A stretch of 64,000 nucleotides of DNA from Blepharisma stoltei ATCC 30299 (taxonomy: Eukaryota; Protista; Ciliophora), in NCBI GenBank assembly GCA_965603825.1, contig CBFDEM010000049.1, forward strand, positions 5,578 through 69,577. The letters are read 5' to 3'. Both the position numbers and the translations under genes were made by a program. The notes beneath the pieces were generated by a model that was not told the origin of the DNA, did no database searches, and worked only from the letters and a program-made list of their open reading frames with translations. Numbering within the stretch: position 1 is the first letter of the stretch; each line of letters begins with the position of its first letter. Positions 14,878 through 64,000 of the stretch are shown piece after piece.

Positions 14878-15516
14878 ATGAATTCTGATCTCAAATACAG
14901 TGAGAAACTCAGCTCAAGCCTGATTGAAAACTTATACGTTGAAGAGGAGCCGCGGTCCTCTAAATACGAACTTCAGTCAGACGATAGACTTGAGCTTGAA
15001 GAACTTATTGATGGCCACCTAATTTTAGGATTCTGGGTACACAGACCTGGTTTTAGCCGCCTATCAAGGCTTTTTACCTTAATAACAGTTGTGCTCTTTG
15101 AGCTCATGCTTGAAGAAGTGCTACTTTTTGTGTATGGGAATAGTGATAATGGAGAAATTATGGGATCCCAAGACTTAGTTTCGAATTACATAAACAAGTA
15201 CCTGGGTTATACCATTTTGGCAGTCATTACAGTGATACCGATTGAAGCCTTTATGATAGCTTCCTTGAGCTTAAACAGAAAACAAACATCGAATTGGGCT
15301 GCAGCTTCAATTGTGATAGGAATTTTGATCATGATTGGATCTGTTGTTGGGATTTTTGTTATGAACTCCCAGATGGATTTTGAATGGTACGCGTTGTGGG
15401 GCTTAAGCTTCTTTACCGGAATATTGCTAGAAGCTGGCATCGTCGAAAGCTTTTTTATGTTTGCAAGATACTTTGTCATTCAGAGTTTCGGGCCTTTTGA
15501 CAAATATATAAAATAA
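14878..15516 (+). CDS. Multi-pass membrane protein, paralog A
   Basis: 212 aa with about four hydrophobic helices; colinear paralog at 16873-17502. Confidence 0.75.
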   Translation: MNSDLKYSEKLSSSLIENLYVEEEPRSSKYELQSDDRLELEELIDGHLILGFWVHRPGFSRLSRLFTLITVVLFELMLEEVLLFVYGNSDNGEIMGSQDLVSNYINKYLGYTILAVITVIPIEAFMIASLSLNRKQTSNWAAASIVIGILIMIGSVVGIFVMNSQMDFEWYALWGLSFFTGILLEAGIVESFFMFARYFVIQSFGPFDKYIK

Positions 15517-16872
15517 TGAGATAAATAACTATTAGGACTTTAATTAATCTCACGAAAAATATTGGTTACTCTCAAAATTTTTGGAGAAAATACCATAAAC
15601 ACTTCATATTTAGTTGACCTCTTCTTTATCAGTCAATAAAATTTTGGATTAAATTACATAAAACTTACCTGAAGCATTTTTCAGACTTTTCCAGTGCCTA
15701 AATTTGTTCATCTAATCAACAATTTTACCTTATTCAAGTATTTCAATGCTATTTTCAAGCTAGAGCTGCTTAATATCTCACCTTTATAAATTAATTGATA
15801 GAAATTCTATAACATCAAAATCGAATTTTCTTTTATTATTTAAACGTGCTATATATAGATTATTCAATTCATATTAAAATTGAATAAAGTTTCAAGCTCT
15901 TATAGAATAAACCATTTTAATTACTTCTATTATTGAGCCTAGCATCGAGGTTTTGTATAATCTCTTCTGAAACTTCTGATGATTTATCGAGCTCTTGAAT
16001 GTACTTTTCAAGCTTCTCAATGGTCTTATTTACTCATGATTATTTCCTGGGGAATACTCAATTTAATAGTTCGCTCATGTTGTATAAAATGCCGCACATT
16101 CTCGTCTCTTTAATTTAACTTTAAAGTCATTTTCTATGAGTCAGAAGTATTTTCCGTGAGTCAATAGTACTGGCTTATCCTCGCTGAACTTTATTTTAAT
16201 TATTTTTCAATTTTACGAAATGATTAGAGAAAAAGAATAAAATAAATCATGATTTTATTTCTTAAGATTTAAACTTAATTTCCCAGCTAGCAAGTTCAAA
16301 TTTAAATTATGGCTCATTTTTCATTAATACCTTAACTATCTAGAAGATAAGGATAAGATTTATAATTTAAATCTTAATTATAAATAAAATTGAAGCCTCA
16401 TTGAATAAAATATTTAAAAGTTTATTCAGAAATAGCTTGATATTTTAGCATCAGCATAATAAATTAAAAAAGTAAATAAATTTGACTGCACTAAAATATT
16501 TAATATTAAATATAAATGGAATAAAGCACAAGTGTATTTTGAAAGCTCAACAAATATTATTTATTTTCGTTTTTTTAGGATTATTTGCCGTACCTGATAG
16601 TTAAATTGGATAACATTTCTTGCTTTTTTTAAATTGAGCCTGTAAATTAATTAAATAAGGTTAAAAAGCTCATATAATAGTATACTAGCGAAAAATTATT
16701 CAGTTTGATTAAAAAAAAGACTATAGAAAGGTGCTTAGATTTTAAGAATTCAAGGTATTCTCTGCATTATAGCAATGCCAAGTGCTCATGAATAATTTCG
16801 CAGCATGATTTTGACCTATAGAAAGTATAATAGAGAGAACTATTTATTTAAGATAAAAACACTATTTGATTT

Positions 16873-17502
16873 TTATTTTTCAATATGTCCAAAACTTTGG
16901 ATAAAAAAGTATCTAGCAAACATGAAAAAGCTCTCAATGATACTAACTTCTAGCAAAATCCCGACCATAAAACTTACAGCCCATAGCCTATTCCATTCAT
17001 TTCCTGCTTGGGGACTCATAAAAAAAATCCCAATAGCCGATATTATCATAACTAAAATTCCAACCACAAATGAAGCAGTAGCCCAATTCGACACTTGCTT
17101 TCTTTTAAAGCTCAGAGAAGCTATCATAAAAGCTTCAATCGGAACCGCTGCAATTATTGCCAAAATTGTATAAACGAAATAATTGTTGATATAATAGATC
17201 GCAAAGTCCAGGGCTCCCATAGCTTCTCCAATGACAATATTACTATCTGTAGAAATCAGAGCTTCTTCGAGCGCCCGCTCAAAAAGCACAATTGTCATTA
17301 GGGTAAAAAGCCTTGAGAGATGGCCAAAATCAGGTCTGCGCACAAAGAAGCCTAGTATGAGATGGCCCTCAATGAGTTCTTCAAGATCAAGTTTCTCATC
17401 TGACTGAAGTTTATGCTTATATAACTGTAGCTCCTCTTCAACATTTAAGCTTTCAATCAGGCTTGAGCTTGTTTTTTCATTGCATTTTAAATCAAAATCC
17501 AT
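16873..17502 (-). CDS. Multi-pass membrane protein, paralog B (inverted duplicate)
   Basis: Aligns end to end with 14878-15516 and shares the 5' flank TATAAAACAATTAAAG-ATG. Confidence 0.75.
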   Translation of the reverse strand: MDFDLKCNEKTSSSLIESLNVEEELQLYKHKLQSDEKLDLEELIEGHLILGFFVRRPDFGHLSRLFTLMTIVLFERALEEALISTDSNIVIGEAMGALDFAIYYINNYFVYTILAIIAAVPIEAFMIASLSFKRKQVSNWATASFVVGILVMIISAIGIFFMSPQAGNEWNRLWAVSFMVGILLEVSIIESFFMFARYFFIQSFGHIEK

Positions 17503-18839
17503 CTTTAATTGTTTTATATTTCTTTATCCAAAAATGGAAATTTTGTACACTATTCAGTAAAAATTTCGGTTAAAATTTTATGATATACAGAATTACACTG
17601 ATAAATGTAGGAATAATTGGCAATGCATGGAAAACTATGCAAATAATAGAATAACAAATTGGGGACTAAGGTAAATAAAAAGGGCTTTACCTTGCTCGTT
17701 AAAATTAATTTAGTGAAGAGTGAATAGCAGTCTTGTATGAAAAAAAACAGTGTAACCCCTTTTTTATTGTGATGCCATTTTCTCATGTTAAAATAAAAGA
17801 GGGAAAGCTATTATTGAGGATAACTATTTTTGATAAAACATTTTTTATACGGAGAATTTCGAAAACTTGTTTTATTCTTGTTTATATATAAGCTTAATTC
17901 TATTTTAATCTTTCTAATTTCTTTATGTATTTTAATAATATATCAGATTCATTAATTTATGCTAATAATAAATTGTTTTGTTATTAGTCTCCTAGATTCT
18001 ATAGCTAGTCTTTCTTTATTACCTTCGGAGAATCACTATCCTTATCTTCCTCTGAGAGCTCTTTCTTTTCTTAAGCATTCATAGAAAATGAGCACCTATG
18101 AAACTTTATACTGAAGGAAAAGGAATCTTGCTTTAATAAAAAACCAAGTAAAAAGTAATTTGAAAAAATTGCTAACTAATCGTATTTAAAATGTGACTAG
18201 ATATCCCACGATGGTAACTTCTCCCTTTTTGGCATCTTCAGTTGGATATGGGCAAAATTAGCCTTAATAGCAGCTGTGCATCAACAGTGCCCATCTTTGC
18301 ATACTCATCCTTTTTTGTATTTTCCAAAGTGGTCATGCTATTGCCTAATCTGACTTGAATTTCGCAGCATTGATAGAAAGTTCCAAAATTATTTTCTAAA
18401 TACTCTGCAAAGTGCATTCATCACATATAAACTGATCTAAAAATATCACAGTTTTACTTTTCCTATAAAATTTTTCTCTCACAAGGAAGCTCGCCTCCTC
18501 ATCACTGAGTTATCTGTTGGGTTCAATGTTACACTTAACTAAAATCAGTCATAATACAAGATCAATGCTGATTTCCATTCCCTTCAGGGTGCATTCTCAT
18601 CTGCTTCGCTGGAGAGATTATCCTTGATCTGCAAGTTAACCAATCCTTTTACTTTACTTTCGCATGAAGGATTTTCCAAAATTTTCTCTAAGATCTCTTT
18701 TCTAATCATTGGGTCAATTAATACAGTTTCCTTCCTCAATTTTACAATTTTGCTAGAACATTCTGCAAAGACTAAGCTATTAGCAGCAAAATCATTTTGG
18801 TTAAATTTATAAGAAGGATGGTTAATTACAACTATCTAT

Positions 18840-19748: not shown

Positions 19749-20223
19749 TAATTTAAAACTACTATTTAATGGCTAGGTTTAGATTGATTTTTTTGAATTG
19801 AAGTAAAGAGAAAGCTAAAAAATATTTTTTGTGTTTTTAGGATATGAGAAGACATTTTTATTTGGAAACAAAAAATGGTCAGATTTTGGGATTTATAAAA
19901 ATGATAGACTTGTATGTTTCATTTCTGTATAATGATTTTTGGTAAATAAAAAAATAGAAATTATAGCGTGGGTAAATAGAAATTTTTGACTGTATATAAC
20001 ATTGAGGAGTATTGTATATTTTTGAAGGAAGATAAGAATTTTGTAAAATTAAGATGGAATTTTTCAATCACTATCAATTGCAATTTCTGAAGTCAAATTA
20101 AGTGTATAATTGATATTGGGCTATTTCTAAAGCATTTTATTGGAGCAGTTTTGAGTACTTTTAAATTTAATCGTTTTATTGTCCAGTTAATTTAATAATA
20201 ATTTATTTAGCACATGATTTATA

Positions 20224-21522
20224 ATGTGCAAATTAAATTATTTCATCAGTCTTTCTCTTGTTCTCGGCACGCTTTTCCAGCCTGAACAAATTCATCTTTC
20301 TTGAACTGAGAACGAAAATGAAATGCGAGCCACCTGGGTAAATTTCCTAAACCTTGAGACTTTTATCAGATATCGCCCAATTTTATGCTCAGATATTATT
20401 CCTGACTGACTTTCAGCCCCATCTTCTTGCACTCCTTTCAATGCAGGCGAAATCATATACCGTCTCCAGTACATCTACACATCGGTAATCCCAAATTTAA
20501 GACCAGAATGCTTTTATGAGTATTTTATCGAAACTTCAATGACCCAAAGCGAAATTTATATGTTCAGTGGGAGAACTCCAGATGCCTCAGAACCATACCA
20601 AGATGCCAAAAATCCATTATCAATGGTGGTCTATGGGGACTTAGGAATTGGGAAAAACTCGCTTTTTGTGAAAAATAGTCTTATGCAGGAAATCAAGGTC
20701 AGGGATTTTTTGGGGATTATTCATATGGGAGATATCGCTTATGATATGCATGAGGACGACGGGATGGTCGGGGATAGGTTTTTAAACTCAATACAAGACA
20801 TATCAGCAAACTTCGCTTACATGGTTTTGCCTGGAAACCATGAATTAAAGCATAATCTAACCCATTACCGCACCAAATTCAAAATGCCTTTAAATTCTGC
20901 TAATGATGGAACAAGTTTTTTTTACTCTTTTAACTTAGGGGCAGCTCATTTTATTATGATTAACACTGAAATGTATATTTCAGACCACCCTGACCAAATT
21001 TTGACACAATATAACTGATTGAAAAAAGACTTAGAAATCGCTAACCAGAACCGACAAGCTTTTCCTTGGATTTTTGTATTTACCCATCGGCCTTTGTACT
21101 GCTCTTTAATTGAATTTTCTGAATGCACCAGCGAGGCTGAGATATTGAAGTCTGCTTTAGAAGGGCTATGACATGAATATGCTGTGGATATCATGTTTGA
21201 GGCTCATAATCATTATTATGAAAGGTGCACGCCAATATATAAAGATAGAGTTGTAAAGAGCGAGTATGATGATTTTAATACCCATTATAATGCAAATGCA
21301 ACTTTGTATATTATTAGTGGAAATGGAGGAAATAATGAAGGCCATAATGATCCTATTCCAGAAGTTTGACAAGATTGGACTTTAGTTATGACTGATGAGT
21401 ATGGGTATGGGAAGCTTGATGTCTTAAACAAAACTCATGTACATTGAACACAATATGGAGCTGTTAGTGGAGATATGGTAGACCATGTATGGCTTATAAA
21501 AAATAGACTAAGATTTTATTAA
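20224..21522 (+). CDS. Purple acid phosphatase (ACP7/PAPL-like), copy 1, secreted
   Basis: Signal peptide, PEQIHLS[W], GDLG, GDIAY, GNHE, THRP and AHNH motifs; six in-frame TGA codons. Confidence 0.92.
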
Positions 21523-21969
21523 TTATAGAAAAAATACTATGAATTGCATTTTACATTGAATTTAGCTTTTGGCATTGAATTTTTTAAATAAGAATCACTT
21601 TATAAATTATTTTTTTTCTCATGTATTTATGAAACGAAAATGGAAGTGAATATGCTTGGAAAAGAATTGAAAAGCCAAGAATTCTAAAAGCGGTTCAAGC
21701 GTATTGCAAACATAATAAAAGATCAGTTTATATTAGATATGCTGATGGACACAGAGAATTTTAAATAAATCAGTGTAAAAACCTTTTTTTAGGTAAACAG
21801 ATTAGCACTCAAGATTTTTTGCTGTTAACCCAGGAAAAAATTACGTTTTTTTATTTTGGGGAGTTAGTACATGAGGAAGACAAAGAAAATTAAGTATGGT
21901 GTAATAATATATCAAATGTATATATATAATCCCCAATTAAAATCATTAAGTTTAATAGATGCCAGCTAA

Positions 21970-23379
21970 TTATAGCGCTATTTGACTAAAATCATAATCT
22001 TTCAACTGTTTTATAAAGCCAGAATTCGGGCGCACGATTCGTCTTTTGTGTTTAATTAAATTTCAAGCTGATTCTATGCTCTCTTTTTGAGCTGCAATTA
22101 TATAGGCTAAAATAATTGTTGGACTTCTTGAAATACCTTTATAGCAGTGAACCAATACTTTTTCATTTGATAGTAATATATTGTGAATGAATTTTATTGC
22201 TTCAGGGAAATACTGAGAAATATTTTCTTTTTCACTATCTTTTACAGGAATAATATGGTAGTTTATATCAGGAAGTTTTTGAACATCCTCATTGTATAAA
22301 ACGCGAACTATATTTCGAATTCCTTTCTTTTTCAATTCTTCAACATCTTGGGCCGCTTCGCCTTCCTTTATTCGGCTTTCTCCTGGTACTTTCCTTTGAA
22401 TGTGGTGTTTTTTGCGTTCTCCTGAATAAGATATAAAAAGAAAGTCGCCAACGGCTTTGTCATCTTTAAACTTGCCTTTATATAGGCCTTCTCCTTTTAT
22501 TTCAAGAGTCCCGAATCCTGATTTTTTGTAATTAGCAACATATCCTTTGTAGATATTTCCATTTTTGTACTTTAATGTTCCTTTTCCTATAGCTGAGTTA
22601 TAAAGAAAGGTGTCAATATACTGTGTCCCATTTGAGAGTACCATTCACCCTTTTCCATGATGCATCAAATATTTAAAGAACCCATAATATGAGTATTCAT
22701 CACTTCAGCTTCTAGCAAGTCCGTGAGGTCTGTCGAATTGAAATTGCCCGTCCCAATGGATATTACGAGTATTCCATTGGTGCCCAAACCCATGGCAACG
22801 GTCATCTTTTCAATCTCCTTCATAGCATTTGCCCTTGGGATAGCGAATAAAACCTTTTCCATGCCTATTCCCGTAAACTCAGTCGCCAACATAAAGCAAG
22901 CCAAGGTTATTTATCTTTCTTCCTTTGCCATGATGCTCGCCATCATACCAGTCGCCTTCATAAATATATTTGGAGTCTTCTTCCATGCAAATTCAAATGC
23001 CACGCCCATTAGGAATTCTTTTCTCGTTAATTTCTCCCAAATATGTCTCATCTACTCCAGCTTTCGTGGGCTTGATTCAAGAGGGCCCTATATCTTCAGC
23101 TTTAAAGTACATTCCGTTATCTTCAAGCTCCTGATAGATTTCGTCACAGATCTTTGCACCAAAGTAAGCTTTGAAAGCTTTAAAATTTGTTGCTATTTGA
23201 ACTATAGATTTAGGTTTGTTTTGTTTGATATGTTTACGAGCCAAATACCCTCTGATAAAGGCTTGAACATAGACAAGTTGACAACTTGATCCCAAATTGA
23301 ACTTTTCTATTCTATCTTGCAGTAATGTGAGATCACTGCTAACCTGATCATTTGCATCATTGCTTGCACAGCTATCCAT
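21970..23379 (-). CDS. IQ-motif + MORN-repeat + dual-specificity phosphatase protein
   Basis: One frame with seven TGA codons. IQ motif VQAFIRGYLARK, MORN repeats (YEGDW..HGKG), catalytic HCYKGISRS, and RPNSGFIKQL. Confidence 0.9.
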
Positions 23380-23574
23380 TTTATTATCTAGAGTTGCTTA
23401 TTTAAAGTTGGCTTAAATTTAATAATTATTATGATAAAAATGAATAAAAACTTAAAAGAAAAAATGAGCATTAAGTCTTGTGTAATCTAAAGTTAAAATG
23501 CTAATTCATAAAATCTCTTAATTTTTTATATAATCTTGTTCAAAAAATATTAATCAATTTCTTATCAATTATTA

Positions 23575-23835
23575 ATGTTAGCCTTTTTTCTATTCGAGTT
23601 CGTCCTCTTTCTAAACCTCACTTTTGTAAATGGGGGGTCTACAAGCTTGAACAAATCAGAATTTCTAACCGAGAGCAACGGAGAAATGTTGTCACCTGGG
23701 TCTCATACATCAATGTGGACTCATTTGTCGTATATCGTCCTGTTCTCTGTCCAAGTGCAGATACAAGTTGGAAGACGATCCAAGGGACACCCCAAGCTTT
23801 TAAAAAGGGCATTGGGTTTTTTTAAAGTAATTTAA
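23575..23835 (+). pseudogene. Frameshifted 5' fragment of purple acid phosphatase copy 2
   Basis: Close nucleotide match to 26656-~26890, with indels and truncation. Confidence 0.85.
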
Positions 23836-24001
23836 TGCAGCAGTTTTTGGTACTTTTAAATTTAATCGTTTGTTTGCCTAGGCAATTTAATAATGCTTCA
23901 TTATGCTCATGATTTATAATGAGTAAATTAAATTATTTCATTGGCATTTCTCTTGTTCTCGGACGCTTTTCTAGCCTGAACAAATTCATCTTTCCTGAAC
24001 T
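23836..24001 (+). pseudogene. Duplicated upstream region and 5' fragment of purple acid phosphatase copy 1
   Basis: Matches ~20142-20308 (GCAGTTTT..TACTTTTAAATTTAATCG..CCTGAACAAATTCATCTTTC). Confidence 0.85.
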
Positions 24002-24199
24002 TAGGAACAGGCACAATGCTTACTCCCCCAATTCATATCTCATTTATTGATTATGGTACTATAATCTTTTCAATAGACTTTATTGCATGAGCTACTTTAC
24101 CAGATGCCTATATTTGATGAAGCAAATATTTCATTTGTTGTTAGTAAATATTCAAGACAGTTAAAGTTTGATACTAGGATAAAATATTTTCAGTGTTAA

Positions 24200-24520
24200 T
24201 TCCTCACTATTCGTGGCTATATACCTCGCTTATTCGGTAATAAATACTAAATACACCAGCTTTCTGTCTCAAATAGCCATAGTAGCACATTGAAGAGAAT
24301 TTTGTTGACTTATTTGGGTAAATTTTAAAATTTATTTTTATGCTTCCTTGCTTTTTTAACTTCCAGAACTCCAAGTCCTGAATTTTTGTAATTAACTGCA
24401 TCCCTTTATAGATATCCCCAGTTCTGCATTATATTTTACCTTTACAACAATCAGTGATCAGGAAGCTTTCAATATTGTCTATTTGAGCAAGGCCTTTCCA
24501 TATATTTTTAATGGAATGCT
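24200..24520 (-). pseudogene. Highly decayed third copy of the MORN region
   Basis: Minus-strand GDIYKRDAVNYKNSGLGVLEVK aligns with GNIYKGYVANYKKSGFGTLEIK of the intact gene; stops and frameshifts are present. Confidence 0.6.
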
Positions 24521-25164
24521 ATTCATTACTTTCAAAAACATTACAGATTATAATAGATAAAGATAGCAAAATTTACTTTAAGCCCCCTTTAGGGGGGTAG
24601 CATTTTGATAAATAAAATGAGCATCGAAGAAGAAAACTAACTCCTCAGAGTCTGCAAGAAGTTGATAGCAGCACGAGAAATGAAAGTTTGAGCTCTCCAG
24701 GATTATCTGATATATATAGCAACTCAGGAAAAACAGACCTGGAAATGTCTCACCTGGAGAGTCCATTAAAAGACTAAAGTAATAGAATAGCAGCATAGAA
24801 TCATCAATCGACTATCACAAGGGAAGTAGACATAAAAGAAGTGCAAGCGAACTAATAGGCAAGAAAAAGAAGATACTCAATCCTGGATGGCACAGACCAA
24901 AAACAAAAAGCTACGAGCCAACATTTGGCTCAACAGTTTGGCTCAACAGTTTGGCTCAATTTCAAATAAAGAAGTAATGATTTTTATATAGAAGAAGAAA
25001 AGCCAAAAACCCTAAAATCGGTTGGACTAATGCAATATAACACAATAAAACTTCCTCAATCAAATTTAATATTAAACTTATAAAAATATTTTATAAAATA
25101 AAAATTAATATATCATTATTTGCATGAAATTTATAGTTGAAGCATAATTAGATGCCATATTTAA

Positions 25165-26420
25165 TTACAACGCTATTTTACTGAAATCATAATCCTTCAG
25201 CTGCTTTATAAAGCAATTATTTGGGCACACAATTGGTCTTTTGCGTTTAATTGAATTTCAAGCTGATTTTAAGCTCTCCTTTTGAGCAGCAATTATATAT
25301 GCCAATACAATTGTTGGGCTTCTTGATATTCCTTAAAGCAGTGAACCAACACTTTTTCATTAGATTGCAATGCATTGTGAATGAGTTTTATTGCTGCAGT
25401 AAAATACTGAGAAATGCTTTCTTTTTCACTATCATTTGCAGGGATAATGTGGTAGTTTATATCAGGGATTTTTTGAGCATCCTCATTGCATAAAACACGA
25501 ACTATATTTCGAATTCCTTTCTTTTTCAGTTCTTCAGCGATTTGGGTTGCTTCTGCACTTCCTAAATATAACTTTGGCAAATTTTCCATGAAAAATACAA
25601 ATTTACCTTGATTTGCGGTAAGCTTTCTGCATTCTCCTGATTAAGATATAAAAAGAAAGTTGCCAATGGCTCTATAAACCTACCTTTATATCAGCCTTCT
25701 CCTTTTATTTCAAGACTACCGGATCCTGATTTTTTGTAATTAGCAGCATGTCCTTTCTAGATATTTCCATTTTTGTCCTTTAATGCTATTTTTCCTATAG
25801 CTGAGTGCAAAAGGAAGGTGCCAATTACAGCATTCCATTTGAGATTACGATTCACCCTTTTCCATGCTGCATACCTTTTTTAAAGAATCCATAATATTAG
25901 TATTCATCACTTCAGTTTCTGGCAAGTCCGTGAGGCGTGCCAAATTGAAATTGCCAAACCCAATGGTAAGCCATGATATTGGCCATCATGCCAGTCGCCT
26001 TTATAAATACATTTGGAGTCTTGTTCCAGGCAAATTCTAATGCCACGCCCATTAGGAATTCTTTTCTCGTTAATTTCTCCAAATATATCTCATCTGCTCC
26101 CCCTTCCGTGAGCCTGATTCAAGAGGGCCCTATATCTTCAGCTTTTAAGTAAATTCCGTTACCTTCAAGCTCCTGATAGACTTCGTCACTGATCTTTGCA
26201 CCAAAGTAAGCTTTGAAAGTTCTGAAATTTGTTGCTATTTGAACTATAGATTAGGTTTGTTTTGTTTGGTATGTTTACGAGCCAAATACCCTCTGATAAA
26301 GGCTTGAGCATAGACAAGTTGACAACTCGACCGCAAATAGAATTTTTCTATTCTATCTTTTAGTGATGGAAGATCACTGCTAATCTGATTATTTGCATCA
26401 TTGCTTGCACAGCTATCCAT
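25165..26420 (-). pseudogene. IQ-MORN-DSP pseudogene
   Basis: Colinear with 21970-23379. It has an internal MORN deletion, a TAC>TAG stop near 25758, and a 1-nt deletion in the catalytic loop (HCFK then frameshift). Confidence 0.9.
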
Positions 26421-26655
26421 TTTATTATCTAGCGTTGCTTATTTAAAGTTGCATAGGCTAAAATTTAATAAAAATAATTTCTACGATATAAATGACTAAA
26501 ACTTAAAAGGAAAAACGAAAATTAATATAATTAAGTCTTATTTAATCTAAAAAATATTTGTACTAATTTTAAAAGTTAAAATACTAATTCATAAAATCTC
26601 TTAATTTTTTATATTGGTTTCAAAAAATATTAACCTAATTTCTTATCAATTATTA

Positions 26656-27975
26656 ATGTCTAACCTTTTTTTTCTATTCCAATTCATCCTCTTCCTAAAC
26701 CTCACTCTTGTAAACGCGGGGATCTACAAGCCTGAGCAAATCAGAATTTCCTGAACCGAGAACAAGGGAGAAATGCGTGTCACCTGGGTCTCATACATCA
26801 GTGTAGACTCATTTGTCGTATATCGTCCAGTTCTCTGTTTAGGTGAAGACACAACTTGGAAGACGATCCAAGGGACTTCCCAAACTTTTAACGAAGGCGA
26901 AATTGTGGTGAAGTTCCAATACATATATACCGCTGTCATGAATAACCTTAATAGTGAATGCAGCTATGAATATTATATAAGAAATTCCATAACAGAAAGT
27001 GAAATTTATATGTTTAGCGGTCGGACTCCAGAGACAAGTCCACCCTATTTAGAGACCAAAAGACCTTTATCAATGATTGTTTTCGGTGATTTAGGGATTG
27101 GGACCAATGCAATGGCAGTAAAGGACATTTTACTCCAAGAAGCCAAGCTCAGAAATTTTTTAGGGATTATTCATATGGGAGATATCGCTTATAATCTCGA
27201 TCAAGACGACGGAACTACAGGTGACGGCTTTTTGAATATTATTCAACCTTTGGCTGCAAACTATGCGTATATGGCAATAATTGGAAACCATGAAGGTTAC
27301 AATAATTCTACTCATTTTAGGACTAGATTCAAAATGCCAGTAAACCAAGACAACCAAGGATCTGGCTATTTCTATTCTTTTAATATAGGGCCAGTCCATT
27401 GGATAGTTATAAGTACTGAAGTTTATATAGACAACACCAAAAAAGCATCAGCAGAAATCCAAACTAATTGACTGAAAAAAGACTTAGAAGCTGCTAATAA
27501 AAATAGAGAGAATTTTCCATGGATTTTTGTCCTTACCCACCATCCTCTTTATTGTTCAACACACTCTGCTGTTACTTGTGGGTCTGAAGCTGAGCTATAT
27601 CAGAGCATTTTAGAAGATATTTTATATGAAAATTCAATAGATATTATGCTACAAGCCCATGTCCATAGCTATGAAAGAGACAAGCCAATCTATAAGAACT
27701 TGACTGTAAAAAGTGACTATGATGACAAACATACACACATCAATGCAAAAGCCCCATTATATATTTTAAGTGGAAATGCAGGGAATAGAGAAGGCCATAA
27801 TGAGCCTTTGCCACCTACTTATAAGGATTGGGGAGTATATATGGCTGATGACTTTGGGTTTGGAAAATTATTTGTTTATAATGAGACACATGTGTTGTGG
27901 ACCCAGTATAGCGCGACGCTTATGAAGGTTGATGACTATGTTTGGCTCATAAAAGATCAGCCTAGATATAATTAA
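26656..27975 (+). CDS. Purple acid phosphatase (ACP7/PAPL-like), copy 2, secreted
   Basis: Signal peptide, PEQIRIS[W], GDLG, GDIAY, GNHE, THHP and AHVH motifs; TGA read-through joins the track ORFs. Confidence 0.92.
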
Positions 27976-28005
27976 TTTTCTTATATAAAAAATAAGTTCA
28001 TAAGA

Positions 28006-28842
28006 ATGCTTCCTATAGCTGCCAGATCTTTTTCAAAAACGACTAAAATATGCGATTTAAGCTGGCTTTTTAAGGCGGATAAGCTAAGCCCATCATTTAT
28101 TAAAGCTGTAGATTCAATGCCAGAATATAAATTAGAGCTTGAAAATTTTTCGAGGGGTTTTGTATGGAAAAGAGGAGATATTGAGTTTCAGATTTTTGAT
28201 AAAAATCAGCTTCAAGGGTATAGGGAAATCATTGCACAATGCTTTGCGTATCATTCTGCTTTTAAAAAGTATGTGGATTTTTCATATGAGGAATGAAGGG
28301 ATTATGTATTGCCAGAACTTGCAGAGCAAACTGATTTTTTGAAATTCAGTGTAGCTGCAAGAGTAAAGGGAGAACTAGCTGGAGTGCTATATTCTATGTC
28401 GTGGGCATCAAGACCTCAATTTCCTGTTTATTTAAAGCCAAATTCAAAAGAGGTTTGAGAAAAGTTAAAGAATTTTGCACAACTTATTAATAAAAGCATT
28501 CCATTTAACTTTGGCGAGCCTGATAGAAGTGGGAAATTATCGCAAGGAACTTTAGACCGCAGTTCAGTTCTTTATTTGGCAGATGTTGGGGTATTGCCTG
28601 AATTCAATGGAAAAAATTTATCTTATGATTTAATGTTTTTATCAGCTTCACTTGGATATCTGTATGAACTAAGGTATGCAATGGCTGTGAGCTTCGACGT
28701 AAGGTCATCTTTTATTCAAAAATTAGGTGGAGTCTCATTTAAGCCAATTTATTTTAAAGACTGTGAGGTTGAAGGAATAAAACAATACCCTGTTGCAGTT
28801 GAAGGAGAAGGAGTATCATGCTTATTTTTGAATATGTCATAA
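28006..28842 (+). CDS. GNAT-fold acetyltransferase-like protein, possible mitochondrial presequence
   Basis: One frame through two TGA codons. LYLADVGVLPEFNGKNL resembles GNAT motif A, and the N-terminus MLPIAARSFSK is presequence-like. Confidence 0.6.
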
Positions 28843-30582
28843 TACTCAAATGGATTATAAATTATTTTGAAAATCAGATTAAAATGATTGTTTATTAAAA
28901 CTATTCATTTAATTCTTTTAAATCTTCTCTCCAGCTTCGAGTAATCTCATCTATTTTTAATTTTTTCTTGGTAATATCTTTTGTCGCCGCGTCTCATTTT
29001 TTAGAAGAATTAACACACTATAATCTTTGCTTTCTTCTGATCTCTTTAGTTCTTTATTTTCCTCAGTATCAATTTTTCTTTAATATTTAAAATCCAGATC
29101 TTTGGGTGCTCATTATTGCTCTCCTAGAGCTTTTATTCAAAATTCTTCTTTTTGTTTATCGATTTTATTCATATTCTTTTAGCTTTCATAATAGTTTCTT
29201 TTATGTCGTGAATATCTTTAGGGGATTTGAATTGCTTTTATTATATTTTGAGCTAACGGATTTCTTAGAAACAGTTGCTTTTTTTCCTTTTGATCTTGAC
29301 CCTTAATATACCTTTATAATAGCTTAAAATTTTCCACTGTCAATATAATTTTTCCGATTTCTTGTGATTAATTTTAATTTCTTCCATGTTTAAAAAGGTT
29401 TTCTTTTTGCGCTAATTATTGCAACTACCTGAATATTCGACTCTAAGGGCTTGCTTTTTTGTTTAAATTTTCAATGTCTAACTCGATGCATCATGTCACA
29501 GTAAATTTTGCTTTATTTCTTTTGAAATTGTTTTTAACGATTCTTCTAACTAATTTCGAAGATTGTAGATTTGCTCAAAGAAGTTACTCACAATTACTAT
29601 CCCAACTCCTAAGGATGTCAAAGCAGAGTAGCTGTACCTTGCTGGCAAAATTATGCTGCAATTTTGTCAATTACTTGATTGTGTATTTTTTGATGATATA
29701 ATAATCTATTTGTTTATAAAAAATGTTTAAATTTAACTTATATGTCACTATGTGAATAAGCAGAGATTTCAAGCCTTAATCAATAATAGCTGAATTGCAG
29801 TTTTAAACTTTGAATATTATAATTAGAATACTAAATATTATTTAACTTTACAAATAAAAACATTAAAACTCCATAAGGGCACTGCATATTTTGATGACTG
29901 GGTGAATGCTGATGGAATGCATTAATTGTAAAAAATTATTAATAGTCACCGCGAAAAGGGATTTATAATTAAAAATTGATGAAGATTGCGAGCTTTTAGT
30001 CAAATTTGACAGGTTGGGGATAAATTCATTCTCAGCTTGAATAACTAAGTGTTATTTAAAAGGCTTTAATATTTTCTTAAATAAATCCTAGATTTTGAAT
30101 TGGCATTAAATCAAAAAATAGCTCTGTATCTGGCATAACCAAAAGAAATTTATTTAATAATAATTAAATTCTTTTATCCCAAGCGTTACCTATCCCCACT
30201 TGCTTCTCAATTTGAGTGTTTAAATTATTAATATAAAAAACTCCTTCTAATTTATTGCTCTAAATCTAAATAATTCAATAATTTTATAAAAAAAAGCAAT
30301 TATCCCAAAAAAACCACAATAATAAAATAATTTAAGCTTTGGGATCAATCTTAACCTAAATCAAGCTTCAAGAATAATCAATTTTAATTTTCAAGCAAAA
30401 TCACATGCCTTATTTATTTTATTTAAATTAATATAAATAATAGATTTTCTATCAAAATAATTCCCATTATTGCCTGAAAGTCTAATCAAAGCTACCAAAA
30501 ATAGTTTAATGAAAATTCATCTCTCAATACCTCCTAGCTTATTAATTTTTTGCATATAAATTGTTGTTAGAAGTTAAGATAA

Positions 30583-31317
30583 ATGGCCGAACAGTTAAAA
30601 ATTAACGTTCCTATAACAAATTTTACAATTGATTTCAGAAGAAACTGCAGATCGGCAAGTGCTATAAAGCGGAGCGAAACAAAAAGAAGCCTATTAAACT
30701 CCTCACAAAAGCTGAACAGAAGTTTGCACAAGTTTAGCAGAGCTATATCAATAGACCCAAGGCAGTTTAGGTCAAAATCTTATAACTCAACTCCTCCAGA
30801 GCCTTTAAGACCAGAGTGTTGGAGACAACCGTCAGCGAAAATAATGGCAAGCAGTAACAAAAAAGAGCAAAAAGAAACAAACCTTCAATCTTTATTATCA
30901 AGCACGACAAATCTAATGAGAAAATACACTTGTCTAGGAAATAAAGTCAGCTTTACTCCATTAAGCAACACAATGAAAAAAAGCAACATAAAATACATAG
31001 AAAATCTGTGCAATGTGACGATGAAAGAATTAGAAAAAAGGGACAAACTGAAAATAAGCATAGCACAGCAGTTAATAAGGATGAATAAAATAAAAGAGAA
31101 TTATAATGATAATGGAAGCTTGAGGGAAGAAAATTGTAATATTTTGCATTCACACTTTGGAAGGGATAGTCCAATGGTATTTGTTTCAAGAAAGTCGCAG
31201 ACAAGGAGTACAAGGAACATTACAAGGGGGAATCTAAATTTTCAATTGAAAAGTAAACTGAGGATTTCTGGGGAAAATGAAAAATTTGGGGAACTGCATC
31301 AATTGGATAATTTATAA
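30583..31317 (+). CDS. Hypothetical basic protein
   Basis: 244-aa ORF from ATG to TAA between AT-rich flanks. Confidence 0.65.
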   Translation: MAEQLKINVPITNFTIDFRRNCRSASAIKRSETKRSLLNSSQKLNRSLHKFSRAISIDPRQFRSKSYNSTPPEPLRPECWRQPSAKIMASSNKKEQKETNLQSLLSSTTNLMRKYTCLGNKVSFTPLSNTMKKSNIKYIENLCNVTMKELEKRDKLKISIAQQLIRMNKIKENYNDNGSLREENCNILHSHFGRDSPMVFVSRKSQTRSTRNITRGNLNFQLKSKLRISGENEKFGELHQLDNL

Positions 31318-31404
31318 ATCTGCAAGTGAAGCTGTTAAAATAATTATTAATCTAAGCTGATTTATATAGTGTAATAGCCAATTAACTTATTTTATTGCAA
31401 GAAT

Positions 31405-31756
31405 TTATATAATAGCTTGCCAATTCGGTTCTATGATTTCTACTAAGCCGCGCCCTTTCCCTTTCTTTGCTGCGTCAAGCTGATGAATCCTTTTGTCCTC
31501 TTCCCAAACGTCAGATTCGTAGCTCATACTATTTCTATCGCTTGGTAAGGGCTCACTATGAGGTCTTCTTTCAGATATTGGTGTTCCGCAGTCAGTTGTT
31601 GAACTAGCCTCGCTGACGCTTCTCATAGGTTACTTAGATACTGTAAAGCGATGTATATGAAAATCCAGAAATCTGAGAGAAAGGAGTTGTCGCTGAATGT
31701 GAGCTTTGATGTGAATTCTCACTGTTTGAACTGTCTCTTTCTTTTTGGCTCTCCAT
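31405..31756 (-). CDS. Small Ser-rich protein, structure unresolved
   Basis: Two Ser-rich segments (ATG 31756 and ORF 31405..31626) lie in different frames, and no clean intron links them. Confidence 0.35.
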
Positions 31757-31888
31757 TTAATATTATAAGAACGCGCAAAAAATGGATTTTAGTTAAGTAA
31801 ATTAAATTTTTAGATTAGACTGTTATACAACTGGTATGAAAATTTCTGTGTCAAAAAAATACGAAATTCTATGTAAAAAATAATATAA

Positions 31889-32352
31889 TTAATAAAATCT
31901 TAGTCTAATTTTTATAAGCCACAATGATCTACCATATCTCCACTAACAGCTCCATATTGGTTCAATGCACATTGTTTTGCTTAAGAAATCAAGCTTCCCA
32001 TATCCATACTCATCAGTCATAACTAAAGTCCAATCTTGTCAAACTTCTGGCATAGGATCATAATGACCTTCATTGTTTCCTCCATTTTCGCTAATAATAT
32101 AAAAAATTGCATTTCCATTATAATGGGCATTAAAATCATCATACCCGCTATTTACAGCTCTATCTTTATATACTGGCCTGCACCTTTCATAATAATGGTT
32201 TTGAGCCTTAAGCATGATATCTACAGCATATTCATGCCATAGCCCTTCTAAAGCTGACCTCGATATCTCAGCCTCACTGGTGCATTCAGAAAATTCAACT
32301 AAAGAGCAGTACAAAGTCCGATGGGTAAATGCAAAAATCCAAGGGAAAGTCC
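31889..32352 (-). pseudogene. Inverted 3' fragment of purple acid phosphatase copy 1
   Basis: Matches ~21060-21525, with small deletions and the metal-ligand change AHNH>AQNH. Confidence 0.9.
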
Positions 32353-32617: not shown

Positions 32618-33283
32618 ATGGTGGAAGCTCCTCAGCCTGTACAATTCAAGCTTGTCTTAATTGGAGATGGAGGTGTTGGCAAAACCACTTTTGTCAAGCG
32701 TCACTTGACTGGTGAATATGAAAAACGCTATATCGCTACAGTCGGTGTCGATGTGCACCCACTTACATTTTTTACAACTCGCGGTCCAGTCTGCTTCAAT
32801 GTTTGGGATACTGCAGGCCAAGAAAAACTTTCAGGACTTAGAGACGGCTATTATATTGGTGGACAATGCGGTATTATCATGTTCGATGTTACCTCACGTA
32901 TCACATACAAAAATGTACCTAAATGGCACAGAGACCTCGTAAGAGTTTGCGAAAACATTCCAATTGTGCTGGTTGGTAACAAAGTCGATGTCAAGGACAG
33001 AAAAGTAAAAGCCAAACAAATCACATATCACAGAAGACACAACCTCCAGTACTTCGATGTCTCAGCCAAGTCCAACTATCAGTTCGAAAAGCCATTCTTG
33101 TGGCTCGCTAGAAGACTCTCAGGAGACGCTAATCTCATGCTTGTCGAAGCTCCAGTATTGGCTCCTCAAGATGTCCAAATTGACCCAGAACAAATGGCAG
33201 AAATCGAAAGAGAAAACGCTGAACTCGCAAGCTTGCAAAACGCTCCACTGCCAGCTGAAGATGAAGATGAGAATTTAGGCTAA
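32618..33283 (+). CDS. RAN: Ran GTPase, copy 1
   Basis: [32 protein letters not shown] and an acidic tail. Confidence 0.98.
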
Positions 33284-33541
33284 GGTGCTTATTAATTAAT
33301 CCTTTTTATTTAATATCCAAGTTTTAGAATTAATATAGGCTGAGACTAAGTTTTTTGAAGGGCAATATTTGCTTAATTTCTAGAAAAATATTTTATTTCT
33401 GATTGACTGAATTATTTGGCTATAAATATAAAACTTATAAGAATTTCTAATTTTATATACTTGACTCATAAATAGGAAATTTGATAGTGTAAATAGGAAC
33501 TAAAATATCTTCCATTTACGCGCAATATATAAATAATAGAT

Positions 33542-34207
33542 ATGGAAGCTCCACCACAGCCTGTGCAGTTCAAGCTTGTCTTAATCGGAGATGGAGGTGT
33601 TGGCAAAACCACCTTTGTCAAGCGTCACTTGACTGGTGAATACGAAAAGAGATATATCGCCACCGTAGGTGTTGATGTGCACCCACTTACATTTTTTACA
33701 ACTCGCGGTCCAGTCTGCTTCAATGTGTGGGACACTGCAGGCCAAGAAAAACTTTCAGGCCTTAGAGATGGCTATTATATTGGAGGACAATGTGGTATTA
33801 TCATGTTTGATGTGACCTCACGCATCACATACAAAAATGTGCCTAAATGGCACAGAGACCTCGTAAGAGTCTGCGAAAATATTCCAATTGTGCTGGTTGG
33901 TAACAAAGTCGATGTCAAGGACAGAAAAGTAAAAGCCAAACAAATCACATACCACAGAAGACACAACCTCCAGTACTTCGATGTCTCAGCCAAGTCCAAC
34001 TATCAGTTCGAAAAGCCATTCTTGTGGCTCGCTAGAAGACTCTCAGGAGACGCTAATCTCATGCTTGTCGAAGCTCCAGTATTAGCTCCTCAAGATGTCC
34101 AAATTGACCCAGAACAAATGGCAGAAATCGAAAGAGAAAACGCTGAACTCGCAAGCTTGCAAAACGCTCCACTGCCAGCTGAAGATGAAGATGAGAACCT
34201 CGGTTAA
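33542..34207 (+). CDS. RAN: Ran GTPase, copy 2
   Basis: Protein identical to copy 1 except for the first few residues. Confidence 0.98.
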
Positions 34208-34571
34208 AGTGCACAATAATTAATTCATTTTATGAGATTATTTCCATATTAAATCTTTAATAATTATCATTTTATTTTAAATAAATTTAATAAATGTTAA
34301 TTACTAAAAGCTTAAATAAAAAATAAAAGCTAAAGATTAATTATCAGCATTATATGAATATAGATAAGGAAATAAAGCTCCTACTAATTAAATTATTTAA
34401 TTTAGCATTCCGCACAATTCAAATTCAAATTTCTCCCTTTATAAAATCTCCTTCTTTTCTTAATAAAAAATATGGCTTTGCAATTCGTTTTATCGCAAAT
34501 TTTTTCAACTATAACACAAACTTTTTCCATAAAAATTCCAGTAGTTTTTTAAAATATATTTCTATACTAAT

Positions 34572-59299: not shown

Positions 59300-59813
59300 A
59301 AAACAAAATCTAAGGCTGATCGAACTGCGCCTATGGCAAGAAATTTGAAGAAGTCTTGAGCAGATATTGGAAAATAAGCATGAATGAAGTTGATCTGGCT
59401 ATTAAACAATGTTGAGTTCAAGTGATTTACTGCCAATTTTGTGATTCTCCGAGGGATATGAGATCACGATTAAAAAAATTGTATGCTCTGAAATGCTAAT
59501 TTTTTATCTACCGGCTAATGCAAAGTTTTCTAATGCTAAAAGTGAGGTAGAAGACTATGAATTCAGTCTCTATGGTGTTATATGCTACTATGGTTCTGAA
59601 AATATTGGGCATTATGCAGCTTATATAATTGCTTAATTCAGTGAATGAGACGAAGATGGGAATGTCTGGAGATTATATAACGACTCATCAGTAAGTGATA
59701 TAGAAATTGCCCGAGGATGGCGCAAAATAGCGCCATCCTCGGGCAATTTCTATAGCTATGATGCAGGAAATAGCTATTTATTTTTTTATTTATTAAATAA
59801 GCCAAGGACCTAA
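59300..59813 (+). pseudogene. Ubiquitin-specific protease C-terminal remnant
   Basis: YEFSLYGVICYYGSENIGHYAAY..*..WRLYNDSSV..SYLFFY (His box, WxxYND and YLLFY-type motifs), with an in-frame TAA. The 5' boundary is approximate. Confidence 0.75.
59699..59754. repeat. Perfect 25-bp inverted repeat with 6-nt loop
   Basis: TATAGAAATTGCCCGAGGATGGCGC-AAAATA-GCGCCATCCTCGGGCAATTTCTATA. Confidence 0.97.
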
Positions 59814-59999
59814 AAAATTCATAAATAAATTGTATCAGATAATGTAAATTTTCTTTTATTTCTAAAATAAAAGATATTTTAGCTCAAATTAATAATATAC
59901 CACGTTTTGCGAATTAGAAAAATAAATACTCATGCACGAGGTTTAGCATATAAATATCGATTGAAGTCTAGCTCCATTATTAAAATTTATAGAAATCAA

Positions 60000-60393
60000 A
60001 TGCAACGACTTATGGACGAGTTTATCAATCTCCAAGACAGACCAGAACCTTATGTCACTATAAGCATAGCAAATCACTCTTTTTACAACTGAAAAGGAAC
60101 ACTTAACGGCCCAGATGGACTCCATACGAAGGTGGATTATTCGAGTTCGAAATTATATTTCCCAAAATTTCATCCAAATATAGATCTGATGAACATGTTT
60201 GCTGAGAATCTTTTCAAATGCCTGAAACCCAAAAGTCCCTGCTAGAAACATCATTTCGTATGTGGTAGGATTATTAAATGATCCTGCACCAAGAGCAGGA
60301 TATATAGGACCTGCCATAGAATTGTGCTTGGAGAATGGAGAAAAATTTAATAGCAAAGCAAGAAAATGGACTTTTGAGCATGCAATGGGATAA
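60000..60393 (+). pseudogene. Ubiquitin-conjugating enzyme E2 (UBC4/5-like) pseudogene
   Basis: QRLMDE..N[W]KGTLNGPDG/PYEGGLF..FP/HPNI/..[W]NP..LLNDP..KARKWT. Several frameshifts, and the YPFKPP segment is missing. Confidence 0.85.
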
Positions 60394-60407: not shown

Positions 60408-60521
60408 TAAGAAATTCTAATAAAGCTGTAGAATTTTACTTATTATATCACAATGTTTAGTAAGAGGTCTTAAGATACAGTGCCAAATATATCACTTATT
60501 TGAAAAACGAGTAAAATAATC
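60408..60521 (+). repeat. 114-bp segment duplicated at 61922-62035
   Basis: Four mismatches over 114 bp by direct comparison. Confidence 0.95.
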
Positions 60522-60676
60522 AAGCACAGACAATGAATATATATATATTTTTGCTTTTCTTAGTCGATAAGATGCTAAATAAGTGCATTGTATATGAATC
60601 AGATTTATCAATAAAAATATTTAAAGGGTTAATAGCAAAATATTATTAAATGAGACTTATTTATTCCCAAATTATT

Positions 60677-61190
60677 CTATCTTAGTCTAGTTAATATTTT
60701 TGATTGTAAATCAAACTTGAAATAACTATTAGATTGACCATTTTGATGTGCAATGTTTATTCCTCCTTTATTATATGACAAATAAACTTGATCAAATCTC
60801 TCATTTACTATTGAGCTTCCAATTTGACATATCGCTTTCATAGATTGATCCGCCACATTCAATTAAATACAGTCTATCTGCACTTATAAGAATTTTGTGT
60901 CTGTTAGCTTGAAAATCATAAGGAACTATTCAGAAGACTTCTGGTCCATAAACTGCATACCTGAAAAGATTTTTATTTAGATATCCAGAAATCACAATAT
61001 ACATGTTAGAATATACACTGCTGCAACAGTAATCAGCTTTTGGCAGTGGTTTTAATTTCCCTCATCTGTTTGAACTCGAATCTAAATAAAATTTCTCTTA
61101 TAGAGTTAAAGCATTTCCATTGCTTCCTCCAAAGCAAAAAACAGCATTTTCGTAATAGATACAAATATCTGCTAGATTATTGCGTTTAGT
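60677..61190 (-). pseudogene. Kelch-repeat gene remnant, 5'-truncated by the TIR element
   Basis: ICIYYENAVFCFGG..*EKF..NR[W]GKLKPLPKAD..IVISGY..ILISADRLYLIECGG, with in-frame stops. Confidence 0.7.
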
Positions 61191-61192
61191 GA

Positions 61193-61923
61193 TACTAGTA
61201 TCACTAGCAACACTAGCAACACTATCAGCACTAACACCACTAGCAACACTATCACCATTAACACCACTAGCAACACTAGCAACAATCTTTTGTGACATTT
61301 AATACTGACACTATTTTGTGTGCCAAAATAATAATATAATAGATTAGAAAATAAACAGCGCATTTAGCCATATACTTAATACAATATAATTTAAAATGGC
61401 TGACTATATTGAGAAGCTTTACAAAAGTGCGGGATTTTCTTTTCGTGCTCCATCAGGAGAAGAGCTCACAGAGAAGCTGCTTGACATTACATCACGCAAT
61501 CCCACAGTTTTTGCAGGTATAGACGTATTTTATGCGTAATATCAATAAACTTTAAAAGATGGCTCTTACCTCAAAATTACAATCTGAACTATGCGGAAAT
61601 CAAAGCACTTATGGAATCTGATAATTTGAAAAGAAAATCAACTTAAATAAACGAAACAGGTGTAAAACGTGTTAAAACAATCAACAAAAATGAGTTTATG
61701 TAATGTTAGATCTCTATAAATCTAAAATATGTTTCATATGAAATTTAAATACTATTTTCTTCTTTCTACTCTTTTTGGTAAATTCTAACACTACTTTGTT
61801 GGTGTGGCTAGTGCTGCTATTGTGTTGCTAGTGTTGCTAGTGGTGTTAATGGTGATAGTGTTGCTAGTGGTGCTAGTGTTGCTAGTGTTGCTAGTGTTGC
61901 TAGTGTTGCTAGTGATACTAGTA
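61193..61923. mobile_element. 731-bp TA-bounded element with ~90-100-bp terminal inverted repeats made of CACTAGCAA-type 9-mers
   Basis: The left end TACTAGTATCACTAGCAACACTAGCAACACTA (61193-61224) is the exact reverse complement of the right end (to 61923). A further 50-bp block is also exactly inverted. A short internal ORF starts at 61396. Confidence 0.8.
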
Positions 61924-62035
61924 AGAAATTCTAGTAAAGCTGTAGAATTTTACTTATTATATTAAAATGTTTAGTAAGAGGTCTTAAGATACAGTGCCAA
62001 ACATATCACTTATTTGAAAAACGAGTAAAATAATC
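61922..62035 (+). repeat. Second copy of the 114-bp segment, directly healed by telomere
   Basis: Starts at the element's terminal TA and ends 1 nt before the telomeric repeat. Confidence 0.95.
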
Positions 62036-62036
62036 G

Positions 62037-64000
62037 AGGGTGTTAGGGTGTTAGGGTGTTAGGGTGTTAGGGTGTTAGGGTGTTAGGGTGTTAGGGTGTT
62101 AGGGTGTTAGGGTGTTAGGGTGTTAGGGTGTTAGGGTGTTAGGGTGTTAGGGTGTTAGGGTGTTAGGGTGTTAGGGTGTTAGGGTGTTAGGGTGTTAGGG
62201 TGTTAGGGTGTTAGGGTGTTAGGGTGTTAGGGTGTTAGGGTGTTAGGGTGTTAGGGTGTTAGGGTGTTAGGGTGTTAGGGTGTTAGGGTGTTAGGGTGTT
62301 AGGGTGTTAGGGTGTTAGGGTGTTAGGGTGTTAGGGTGTTAGGGTGTTAGGGTGTTAGGGTGTTAGGGTGTTAGGGTGTTAGGGTGTTAGGGTGTTAGGG
62401 TGTTAGGGTGTTAGGGTGTGTTAGGGTGTTAGGGTGTTAGGGTGTTAGGGTGTTAGGGTGTTAGGGTGTTAGGGTGTTAGGGTGTTAGGGTGTTAGGGTG
62501 TTAGGGTGTTAGGGTGTTAGGGTGTTAGGGTGTTAGGGTGTTAGGGTGTTAGGGTGTTAGGGTGTTAGGGTGTTAGGGTGTTAGGGTGTTAGGGTGTTAG
62601 GGTGTTAGGGTGTTAGGGGTGTTAGGGTGTTAGGGTGTTAGGGTGTTAGGGTGTTAGGGTGTTAGGGTGTTAGGGTGTTAGGGTGTTAGGGTGTTAGGGT
62701 GTTAGGGTGTTAGGGTGTTAGGGTGTTAGGGTGTTAGGGTGTTAGGGGTGTTAGGGTGTTAGGGTGTTAGGGTGTTAGGGTGTTAGGGTGTTAGGGTGTT
62801 AGGGTGTTAGGGTGTTAGGGTGTTAGGGTGTTAGGGTGTTAGGGTGTTAGGGTGTTAGGGTGTTAGGGTGTTAGGGTGTTAGGGTGTTAGGGTGTTAGGG
62901 TGTTAGGGTGTTAGGGTGTTAGGGTGTTAGGGTGTTAGGGTGTTAGGGTGTTAGGGTGTTAGGGTGTTAGGGTGTTAGGGTGTTAGGGTGTTAGGGTGTT
63001 AGGGTGTTAGGGTGTTAGGGTGTTAGGGTGTTAGGGTGTTAGGGTGTTAGGGTGTTAGGGTGTTAGGGTGTTAGGGTGTTAGGGTGTTAGGGTGTTAGGG
63101 TGTTAGGGTGTTAGGGTGTTAGGGTGTTAGGGTGTTAGGGTGTTAGGGTGTTAGGGTGTTAGGGTGTTAGGGTGTTAGGGTGTTAGGGTGTTAGGGTGTT
63201 AGGGTGTTAGGGTGTTAGGGTGTTAGGGTGTTAGGGTGTTAGGGTGTTAGGGTGTTAGGGTGTTAGGGTGTTAGGGTGTTAGGGTGTTAGGGTGTTAGGG
63301 TGTTAGGGTGTTAGGGTGTTAGGGTGTTAGGGTGTTAGGGTGTTAGGGTGTTAGGGTGTTAGGGTGTTAGGGTGTTAGGGTGTTAGGGTGTTAGGGTGTT
63401 AGGGTGTTAGGGTGTTAGGGTGTTAGGGTGTTAGGGTGTTAGGGTGTTAGGGTGTTAGGGTGTTAGGGTGTTAGGGTGTTAGGGTGTTAGGGTGTTAGGT
63501 GTTAGGGTGTTAGGGTGTTAGGGTGTTAGGGTGTTAGGGTGTTAGGGTGTTAGGGTGTTAGGGTGTTAGGGTGTTAGGGTGTTAGGGTGTTAGGGTGTTA
63601 GGGTGTTAGGGTGTTAGGGTGTTAGGGTGTTAGGGTGTTAGGGTGTTAGGGTGTTAGGGTGTTAGGGTGTTAGGGTGTTAGGGTAGGGTGTTAGGGTGTT
63701 AGGGTGTTAGGGTGTTAGGGTTAGGGTGTTAGGGTGTTAGGGTGTTAGGGTGTTAGGGTGTTAGGGTGTTAGGGTGTTTAGGGTGTTAGGGTGTTAGGGT
63801 GTTAGGGTGTTAGGGTAGTGTTAGGGTGTTAGGGTGTTAGGGTGTTAGGGGTGTTAGGGTGTTAGGGTGTTAGGGTGTTAGGGTGTTAGGGTGTTAGGGT
63901 GTTAGGGTGTTAGGGTGTTAGGGTGTTAGGGTGTTAGGGTGTTAGGGTGTTAGGGTGTTAGGGTGTTAGGGTGTTAGGGTGTTAGGGTGTTAGGGTGTTA
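62037..64000 (+). repeat. Telomere (GGGTGTTA)n / (CCCTAACA)n
   Basis: About 245 copies of the 8-mer run to the window end with the G-rich strand 3'; this is the heterotrich ciliate telomere repeat. Confidence 0.99.

Follow-up and report, generated by a model that had tools for sequence, protein, structure and literature searches.

The window analysed here is a stretch of 64,000 nucleotides, i.e. the last 64 kb of the 69.6-kb contig C49 in the somatic (MAC) assembly of Blepharisma stoltei (PMC9942806). The somatic genome comprises 41.46 Mb in 64 contigs, reads TGA as Trp and has an 8-bp telomere unit; the contig ends of this assembly were manually capped with a representative telomeric read (PMC9942806; 10.1101/2021.12.14.471607). 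Close to the telomere, an element with long inverted arms lies beside a broken host gene. The following features were located there in window coordinates, with C34 and C38 denoting contigs that carry further somatic copies:

60600-61163, minus strand: host flank, the 3' part of a broken kelch-like gene from a large family; homology to paralogs stops at 61161-61163
61160-61192, plus strand: outer, non-repetitive part of the left arm, matching both C38 ends; start uncertain (61160-61165)
61187-61206, no strand: perfect 20-bp palindrome at the base of the left array, including the left TA of the original prediction
61194-61284, plus strand: left subterminal array, about 10 units of ACTAGCAAC
61396-61511, plus strand: first 39 codons of a MULE transposase, 77% DNA identity to C34
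61512-61703, plus strand: last ~60 codons of the transposase, right after the SWIM finger, with a KRWLL motif
61802-61922, minus strand: right subterminal array, about 13 units, outer end cut off
61922-61923, no strand: TA common to the truncated arm and the host duplication; marks a junction left by a deletion or rearrangement and is not a terminus
61922-62038, plus strand: 117-bp, 96% copy of 60408-60524 (3' flank of a UBC-like gene), with the telomere added at its end
62037-64000, plus strand: telomere, about 245 copies of the 8-bp unit

The UBC-like gene itself is frameshifted (59998-60393), and near-complete paralogous segments of it are found on contigs C35 and C15. Elsewhere in the window, direct and inverted duplications of 0.2-1 kb occur at 14842-17538, 20115-27994, 21059-32349 and 32622-34233. 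Furthermore, a perfect, TA-bounded 25-bp hairpin lies inside a protease-like reading frame (59699-59754). In the germline assembly, the ends of a ~229-bp palindrome (L065:492-720) match it at 96%. The hairpin occurs with many differing flanks and has a 4-10-fold higher scaled depth in the runs of study P1; it likely derives in shortened form from a palindromic IES family and has been retained.

The arms were originally placed at 61193-61284 and 61823-61923, and this description was borne out, including the exact inversion of the first 32 bp and of a 50-bp block, the one extra 9-mer in the right arm, and the C/A-rich left and G/T-rich right composition. The fold of the element has z = -13. The TA dinucleotides at 61193 and 61922 are present as well, but they are not the termini for which they had been taken, because the left one is internal to the arm and the right one marks the junction. 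In fact, the left arm runs ~30 bp past its TA, to about 61160-61165, and in the C38 copy (93%) the arm extends at least 22 bp past the left TA, and about 30 bp at the longer end. The left outer arm starts with TACA, as do four other somatic ends, whereas the intact germline MULEs described below start with GGG. A reading of TA as a true target duplication was considered as well; the host paralogs have TA at three ends but TT at the intact C38 end, and truncation seems the likelier of the two. We rejected the arms as protein-coding repeats, because several frames are open on both strands and the unit number varies freely.

The somatic assembly contains four copies of this subfamily (in the window and on C38, C23 and C34), three of which are internal, 43, 75 and 193 kb into their contigs. 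The C38 copy has the same internal deletion as the window copy, in frame (83 aa), which is hence shared by two of the four copies, and C23 has a different one. C34 retains the middle deleted in the window and encodes a near-full, frameshifted (broken) transposase; the element (L032:5544-8153) is split by an inversion, with a degenerate 9-bp array still upstream of the N-terminus. This inversion is tied to duplicated WD40/ion-channel-like genes and is possibly an element-linked rearrangement.

The interior of the window element consists of transposase remnants. Two stretches match the C34 transposase, one of 285 bp at 72% identity (E 2e-35) and one of 100 bp at 77%. From Met1 onwards, the N-terminus can be aligned with the MULE on somatic contig C12 (0 of 3000 shuffles) and with that at germline locus L064 (E 6e-4). 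In the window copy, the C-terminal piece has lost 1 nt at 61534 and carries a stop at 61644. C38 and all four read sets have an extra T, which joins the N and C parts into one 83-aa frame. Pfam scans of the window ORF and of single stop-free C34 gene pieces gave nothing significant, so the MULE assignment rests on comparison with PF10551-positive proteins. Over 216 aa, the C34 transposase shares 37% of its residues with the PF10551-positive proteins on contigs C12 and C48, and it matches a profile of five somatic MULE proteins at positions 91-618. The SWIM search did not detect C34, although a SWIM-type Cys/His pattern is visible before its KRWLL tail. A protein tree was poorly supported, contained one row out of frame and was set aside. 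The domains of a MULE transposase (PF10551, zinc finger, SWIM) lie on C34 and the germline kin, and the window keeps two tips only.

Could the fused 83-aa frame be a domesticated mini-gene, whose N and C parts are kept together because they serve some function, for example in dampening MULE activity? The reading frame is intact across the fusion in C38, where the fusion is annotated as protein P0002, and also in the majority read haplotype. However, by chance alone a third of deletions would be in frame, the window copy carries a frameshift, no homolog was identified outside B. stoltei, and no RNA run on record contains the stretch beyond a small share. We thus consider such a function highly improbable.

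Read evidence is available as Logan contigs from four DNA runs, which cover the window element. Contigs cannot prove absence, and no joint skipping the element is listed among those of the four runs. The contigs that match the flank exactly have a depth of 28-46, compared to 124-520 for the paralogs, and the contig end at the window looks like a minor form. In all four read sets, these flank contigs stop at 61159, just before the element. The interior read contigs differ from the window at 4 sites and 1 gap, where C38 differs at 9 and 2; these distinct differences represent a third haplotype, which implies copies that are not in the assembly. Moreover, the arm depth in three P1 runs is 7-9 times that in the P2 run, when scaled to a somatic gene family (contig depth does not equal copy number). 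The run types are not on record; P1 comprises four runs, which is also the number of germline-enriched fractions in the published study, and so the 9-bp array may be far commoner in the germline than in the soma.

Taken together, the window element is very probably a non-autonomous, internally deleted MULE relic with the layout of a type 2 foldback element. Its TIRs are longer than 100 bp, as is typical of Mutator/MULE elements, with about 125 bp in the window and 250-360 bp at C38, and they consist of an outer unique part and subterminal tandem repeats, as in type 2 foldback elements. A target-site duplication (TSD) of 8-10 bp was found neither at the window nor at C38 or C34, where the ends are truncated, and there is no G-rich terminus like that of intact B. 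stoltei elements, as the somatic ends start with TACA or are cut. Because TSD and terminus are missing, the window copy is filed as a MULE-derived remnant and not as an intact member. Of the original prediction, the multi-copy, non-autonomous TIR element in somatic DNA stands, and its identity as a TA-bounded telomere mimic does not.

The closest known architecture is that of the type 2 foldback elements Muta1 and Muta1NA of Aedes aegypti, which share with the window lineage the MULE transposase, a short unique outer segment followed by a tandem array in each arm and, in Muta1NA, non-autonomous derivatives with unequal repeat numbers between the arms. The subterminal repeats of Aedes MULEs are 9-15 bp long, bind the transposase and vary in number in derivatives; in Muta1 they raise excision, and excision with the TSD is about 90% precise (PMC5225508, PMC5499845). 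Unlike Muta1, the window unit of 9 bp is arranged head to tail and without spacers, the termini and TSD are lost, and Blepharisma has separate germline and somatic genomes.

The likeness of the arms to telomeres had led to the proposal that the element mimics a telomere, its arms being bound by telomere proteins or serving as seeds for telomere addition. Indeed, the 9-bp unit matches the telomere at six of eight positions in the same polarity, the longest shared word is 8 bp, and the window copy lies 115 bp from the telomere. However, when 9-mers are drawn at random, 4-5% are this telomere-like in the given polarity and 8-11% in either, so that the match is within reach of chance (4-11%). No CCC/GGG tract occurs in about 1.66 kb of arms, the commonest arm core is CTAGC and not the telomeric CTAAC (112 versus 3), and a germline element of the same arm layout is built from an unrelated 15-bp unit. 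The TIRs neither terminate in host telomeric repeats nor contain a full telomere unit with its C-tract, and the arrays are subterminal. The telomere was added ~115 bp beyond the right arm, on the duplicated host stretch rather than on the arm. A C/A-rich 5' arm also characterises Tel-1 of Tetrahymena, a ciliate TIR element that bears host telomeric repeats at its TIR ends. The same arm composition is seen in the Oxytricha TBEs, another group of ciliate TIR elements, which carry true telomeric repeats at their very ends, a Tc1/mariner transposase and an ANT target (PMC4724952), none of which is present at the window. Nor is a special link to chromosome ends supported, given that three of the four copies are internal and that telomeres are added at about 46,700 sites across the Blepharisma genome (PMC9942806). 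Hence, telomere mimicry deserves very little credence.

A protein search with a C34 piece returned B. stoltei proteins, five of which each have just a single contig on record, and an alignment search added a sixth. Every significant relative identified is a protein of B. stoltei, and several carry the name MULE or SWIM; leaving out one weak 1709-aa match, no homolog from outside the species was found among the matches looked up. The contigs of the germline relatives were taken from the MAC+IES assembly GCA_914767885. Six germline elements of 2.4-4.4 kb encode a MULE; all have inverted ends and a 9-bp TSD, and GGG is read at one terminus or at both. A seventh element is non-coding:

L063, 8108-12063: MULE, inverted ends of 757 bp
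L064, 8495-12391: MULE, inverted ends of about 700 bp
L065, 6420-10790: MULE, inverted ends of about 800 bp, TSD without TA
L066, 6762-9672: MULE, inverted ends of about 315 bp
L067, 7033-9943: MULE, inverted ends of about 330 bp, gapped
L068, 6414-8783: MULE, internally deleted, inverted ends short
L066, 3430-4427: non-coding foldback MITE-like IES of 998 bp, ~20 copies of a 15-bp unit per arm, 9-bp TSD

In L067, all three candidate catalytic acidic motifs are present, as judged by eye, and three of the six MULEs have TSDs without TA. The 998-bp foldback shows the window layout, i.e. a short unique end and arrays in both arms, with a non-telomeric unit, and it is precisely excised from coding sequence. 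For five of seven germline elements, an exact empty site with a single TSD copy exists in the somatic assembly, and reading frames were reopened where tested; L065 was excised to one target copy although its TSD lacks TA. Empty-site patterns for the L066 MULE and L067 were not found in the somatic assembly, and these two may be nested in larger IESs. The germline relatives share the protein but little or no TIR sequence with the window subfamily, and look-ups for the window, C38 and C34 loci retrieved no intact germline copy with the 9-bp array. Judging from these relatives, we infer that the true ends of the 9-bp-array subfamily would have resembled theirs.

L068 is 99% identical to the somatic remnants on C12 (L046:1997-4271) and C48 (L045:2217-4527), both with 53-68-bp repeats upstream of the gene; one of these misses one end and the other both. 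By sequence comparison, the two are probably recent remnants of a germline transposon and not domesticated genes. Each of the six somatic MULE remnants is missing one end or both, whereas the seven germline-limited elements all have both, in a sample that is small, biased and non-independent, as the germline copies were located via IES-only proteins.

These data also bear on the claim that the element is a TA-bounded IES or a Tc1/mariner-type MITE, similar to BogoMITE, which was retained in the assembly. TA occurs at both ends given originally, and the low-depth contig end holds the likely retained IES-type hairpin mentioned above. However, the left TA lies within the arm, the interior and its transposase are of the Mutator type, the flanks are unrelated without a contiguous empty site, and the ends do not resemble those published for Bogo or BstTc1 (PMC9942856). 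The predicted TA-to-TA excision found no support either, because the element is present in the somatic assembly and, as far as contigs can tell, no TA-to-TA or other skipping joint appears in the four runs. We regard this origin as very unlikely. As for the high copy number expected of a MITE, there are four somatic copies, two with the deletion of the window copy, and the reads add the third haplotype and the 7-9-fold arm depth in one study. Bogo/BogoMITE and BstTc1 are Tc1/mariner elements of Blepharisma with 30-38-bp TIRs and TAA or TATA targets (PMC9942856). They resemble the MULE lineage in that the same genome contains a transposon and its deletion derivative and that intact germline relatives double as IESs, and they differ from its Mutator affiliation, long arms and, in the relatives, 9-bp targets.

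A different question, which concerns the end loss only, is whether the germline copy is still intact and a host excisase clips the outer ends in each new somatic nucleus, cutting from a flank TA to a TA inside the arm and leaving the interior as a footprint. All seven somatic ends of the subfamily lie at a TA-containing junction, five of them start with TACA across two divergent subfamilies, and TA is common to the host paralogs at the window, C34 and the left end of C38; moreover, Blepharisma IES repeats mostly contain TA (PMC9942856). On the other hand, TA is frequent at 67% AT, the C38 flanks stem from two gene families and so presuppose a large deletion, a sister family has a remnant on C48 that lies in a kelch gene and shows no TA pattern, and no such joint is listed in the read contigs of the four runs. 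Clipping, with the same MULE origin, is therefore possible but on the unlikely side, and the ends were probably lost once in the germline rather than in each development.

Returning to the MULE relic, its history may be pictured as follows. The short form would have been mobilised in trans, as suggested by Muta1, and by the same analogy its arrays would be repeated transposase-binding sites and not telomere decoys. The GGG termini and the 9-bp TSD could have been lost through deletions ending at TA-containing microhomologies, which would leave the copy immobile, so that it stays through somatic genome building, unlike its intact germline relatives. Its position beside the telomere probably results from the alternative addition of telomeres that occurs across the genome, here at a contig end of low coverage. 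A further, doubtful step would be that germline MULEs are cut out at their own 9-bp TSDs, even those without TA, by a MULE transposase, and that end-less copies escape; this transposase may be element-encoded or a developmentally induced, domesticated one.

The genome papers reported MULE domains in IESs, named only Bogo and BstTc1 as germline transposons and described the somatic MULE genes as TIR-less (PMC9942856, PMC9942806). The domesticated somatic MULEs of Blepharisma (PMC9942806), Oxytricha and Euplotes vannus (PMC12513430) share the zinc finger, MULE domain, SWIM finger and RWLL tail with the window lineage, which differs by having TIRs; C12 and C48, two of the six somatic MULE matches, are 99% identical to a germline element bounded by TIRs and a TSD. 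Within our incomplete coverage of the literature, and the authors' unclassified repeat families aside, no account of Blepharisma MULEs with TIRs was found. Hence, the family is apparently undescribed, as had been suspected, and the same apparently applies to the set of germline Mutator elements with 9-bp boundaries that behave as IESs.

The window element itself is a broken relic of known architecture, and its value is that of a pointer to the germline MULEs. Six diverse TIR-bearing MULEs in the published germline assembly contrast with only two named Tc1/mariner transposons. Moreover, Blepharisma, Oxytricha and Euplotes all induce MULE transposases while the somatic genome is being built, and no role is known for these enzymes. 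With the germline loci and the end-less somatic remnants as natural controls, it is directly testable whether a MULE transposase excises a class of IESs. If true, Mutator-specific excision would provide the first substrate for the domesticated MULE genes of ciliates.
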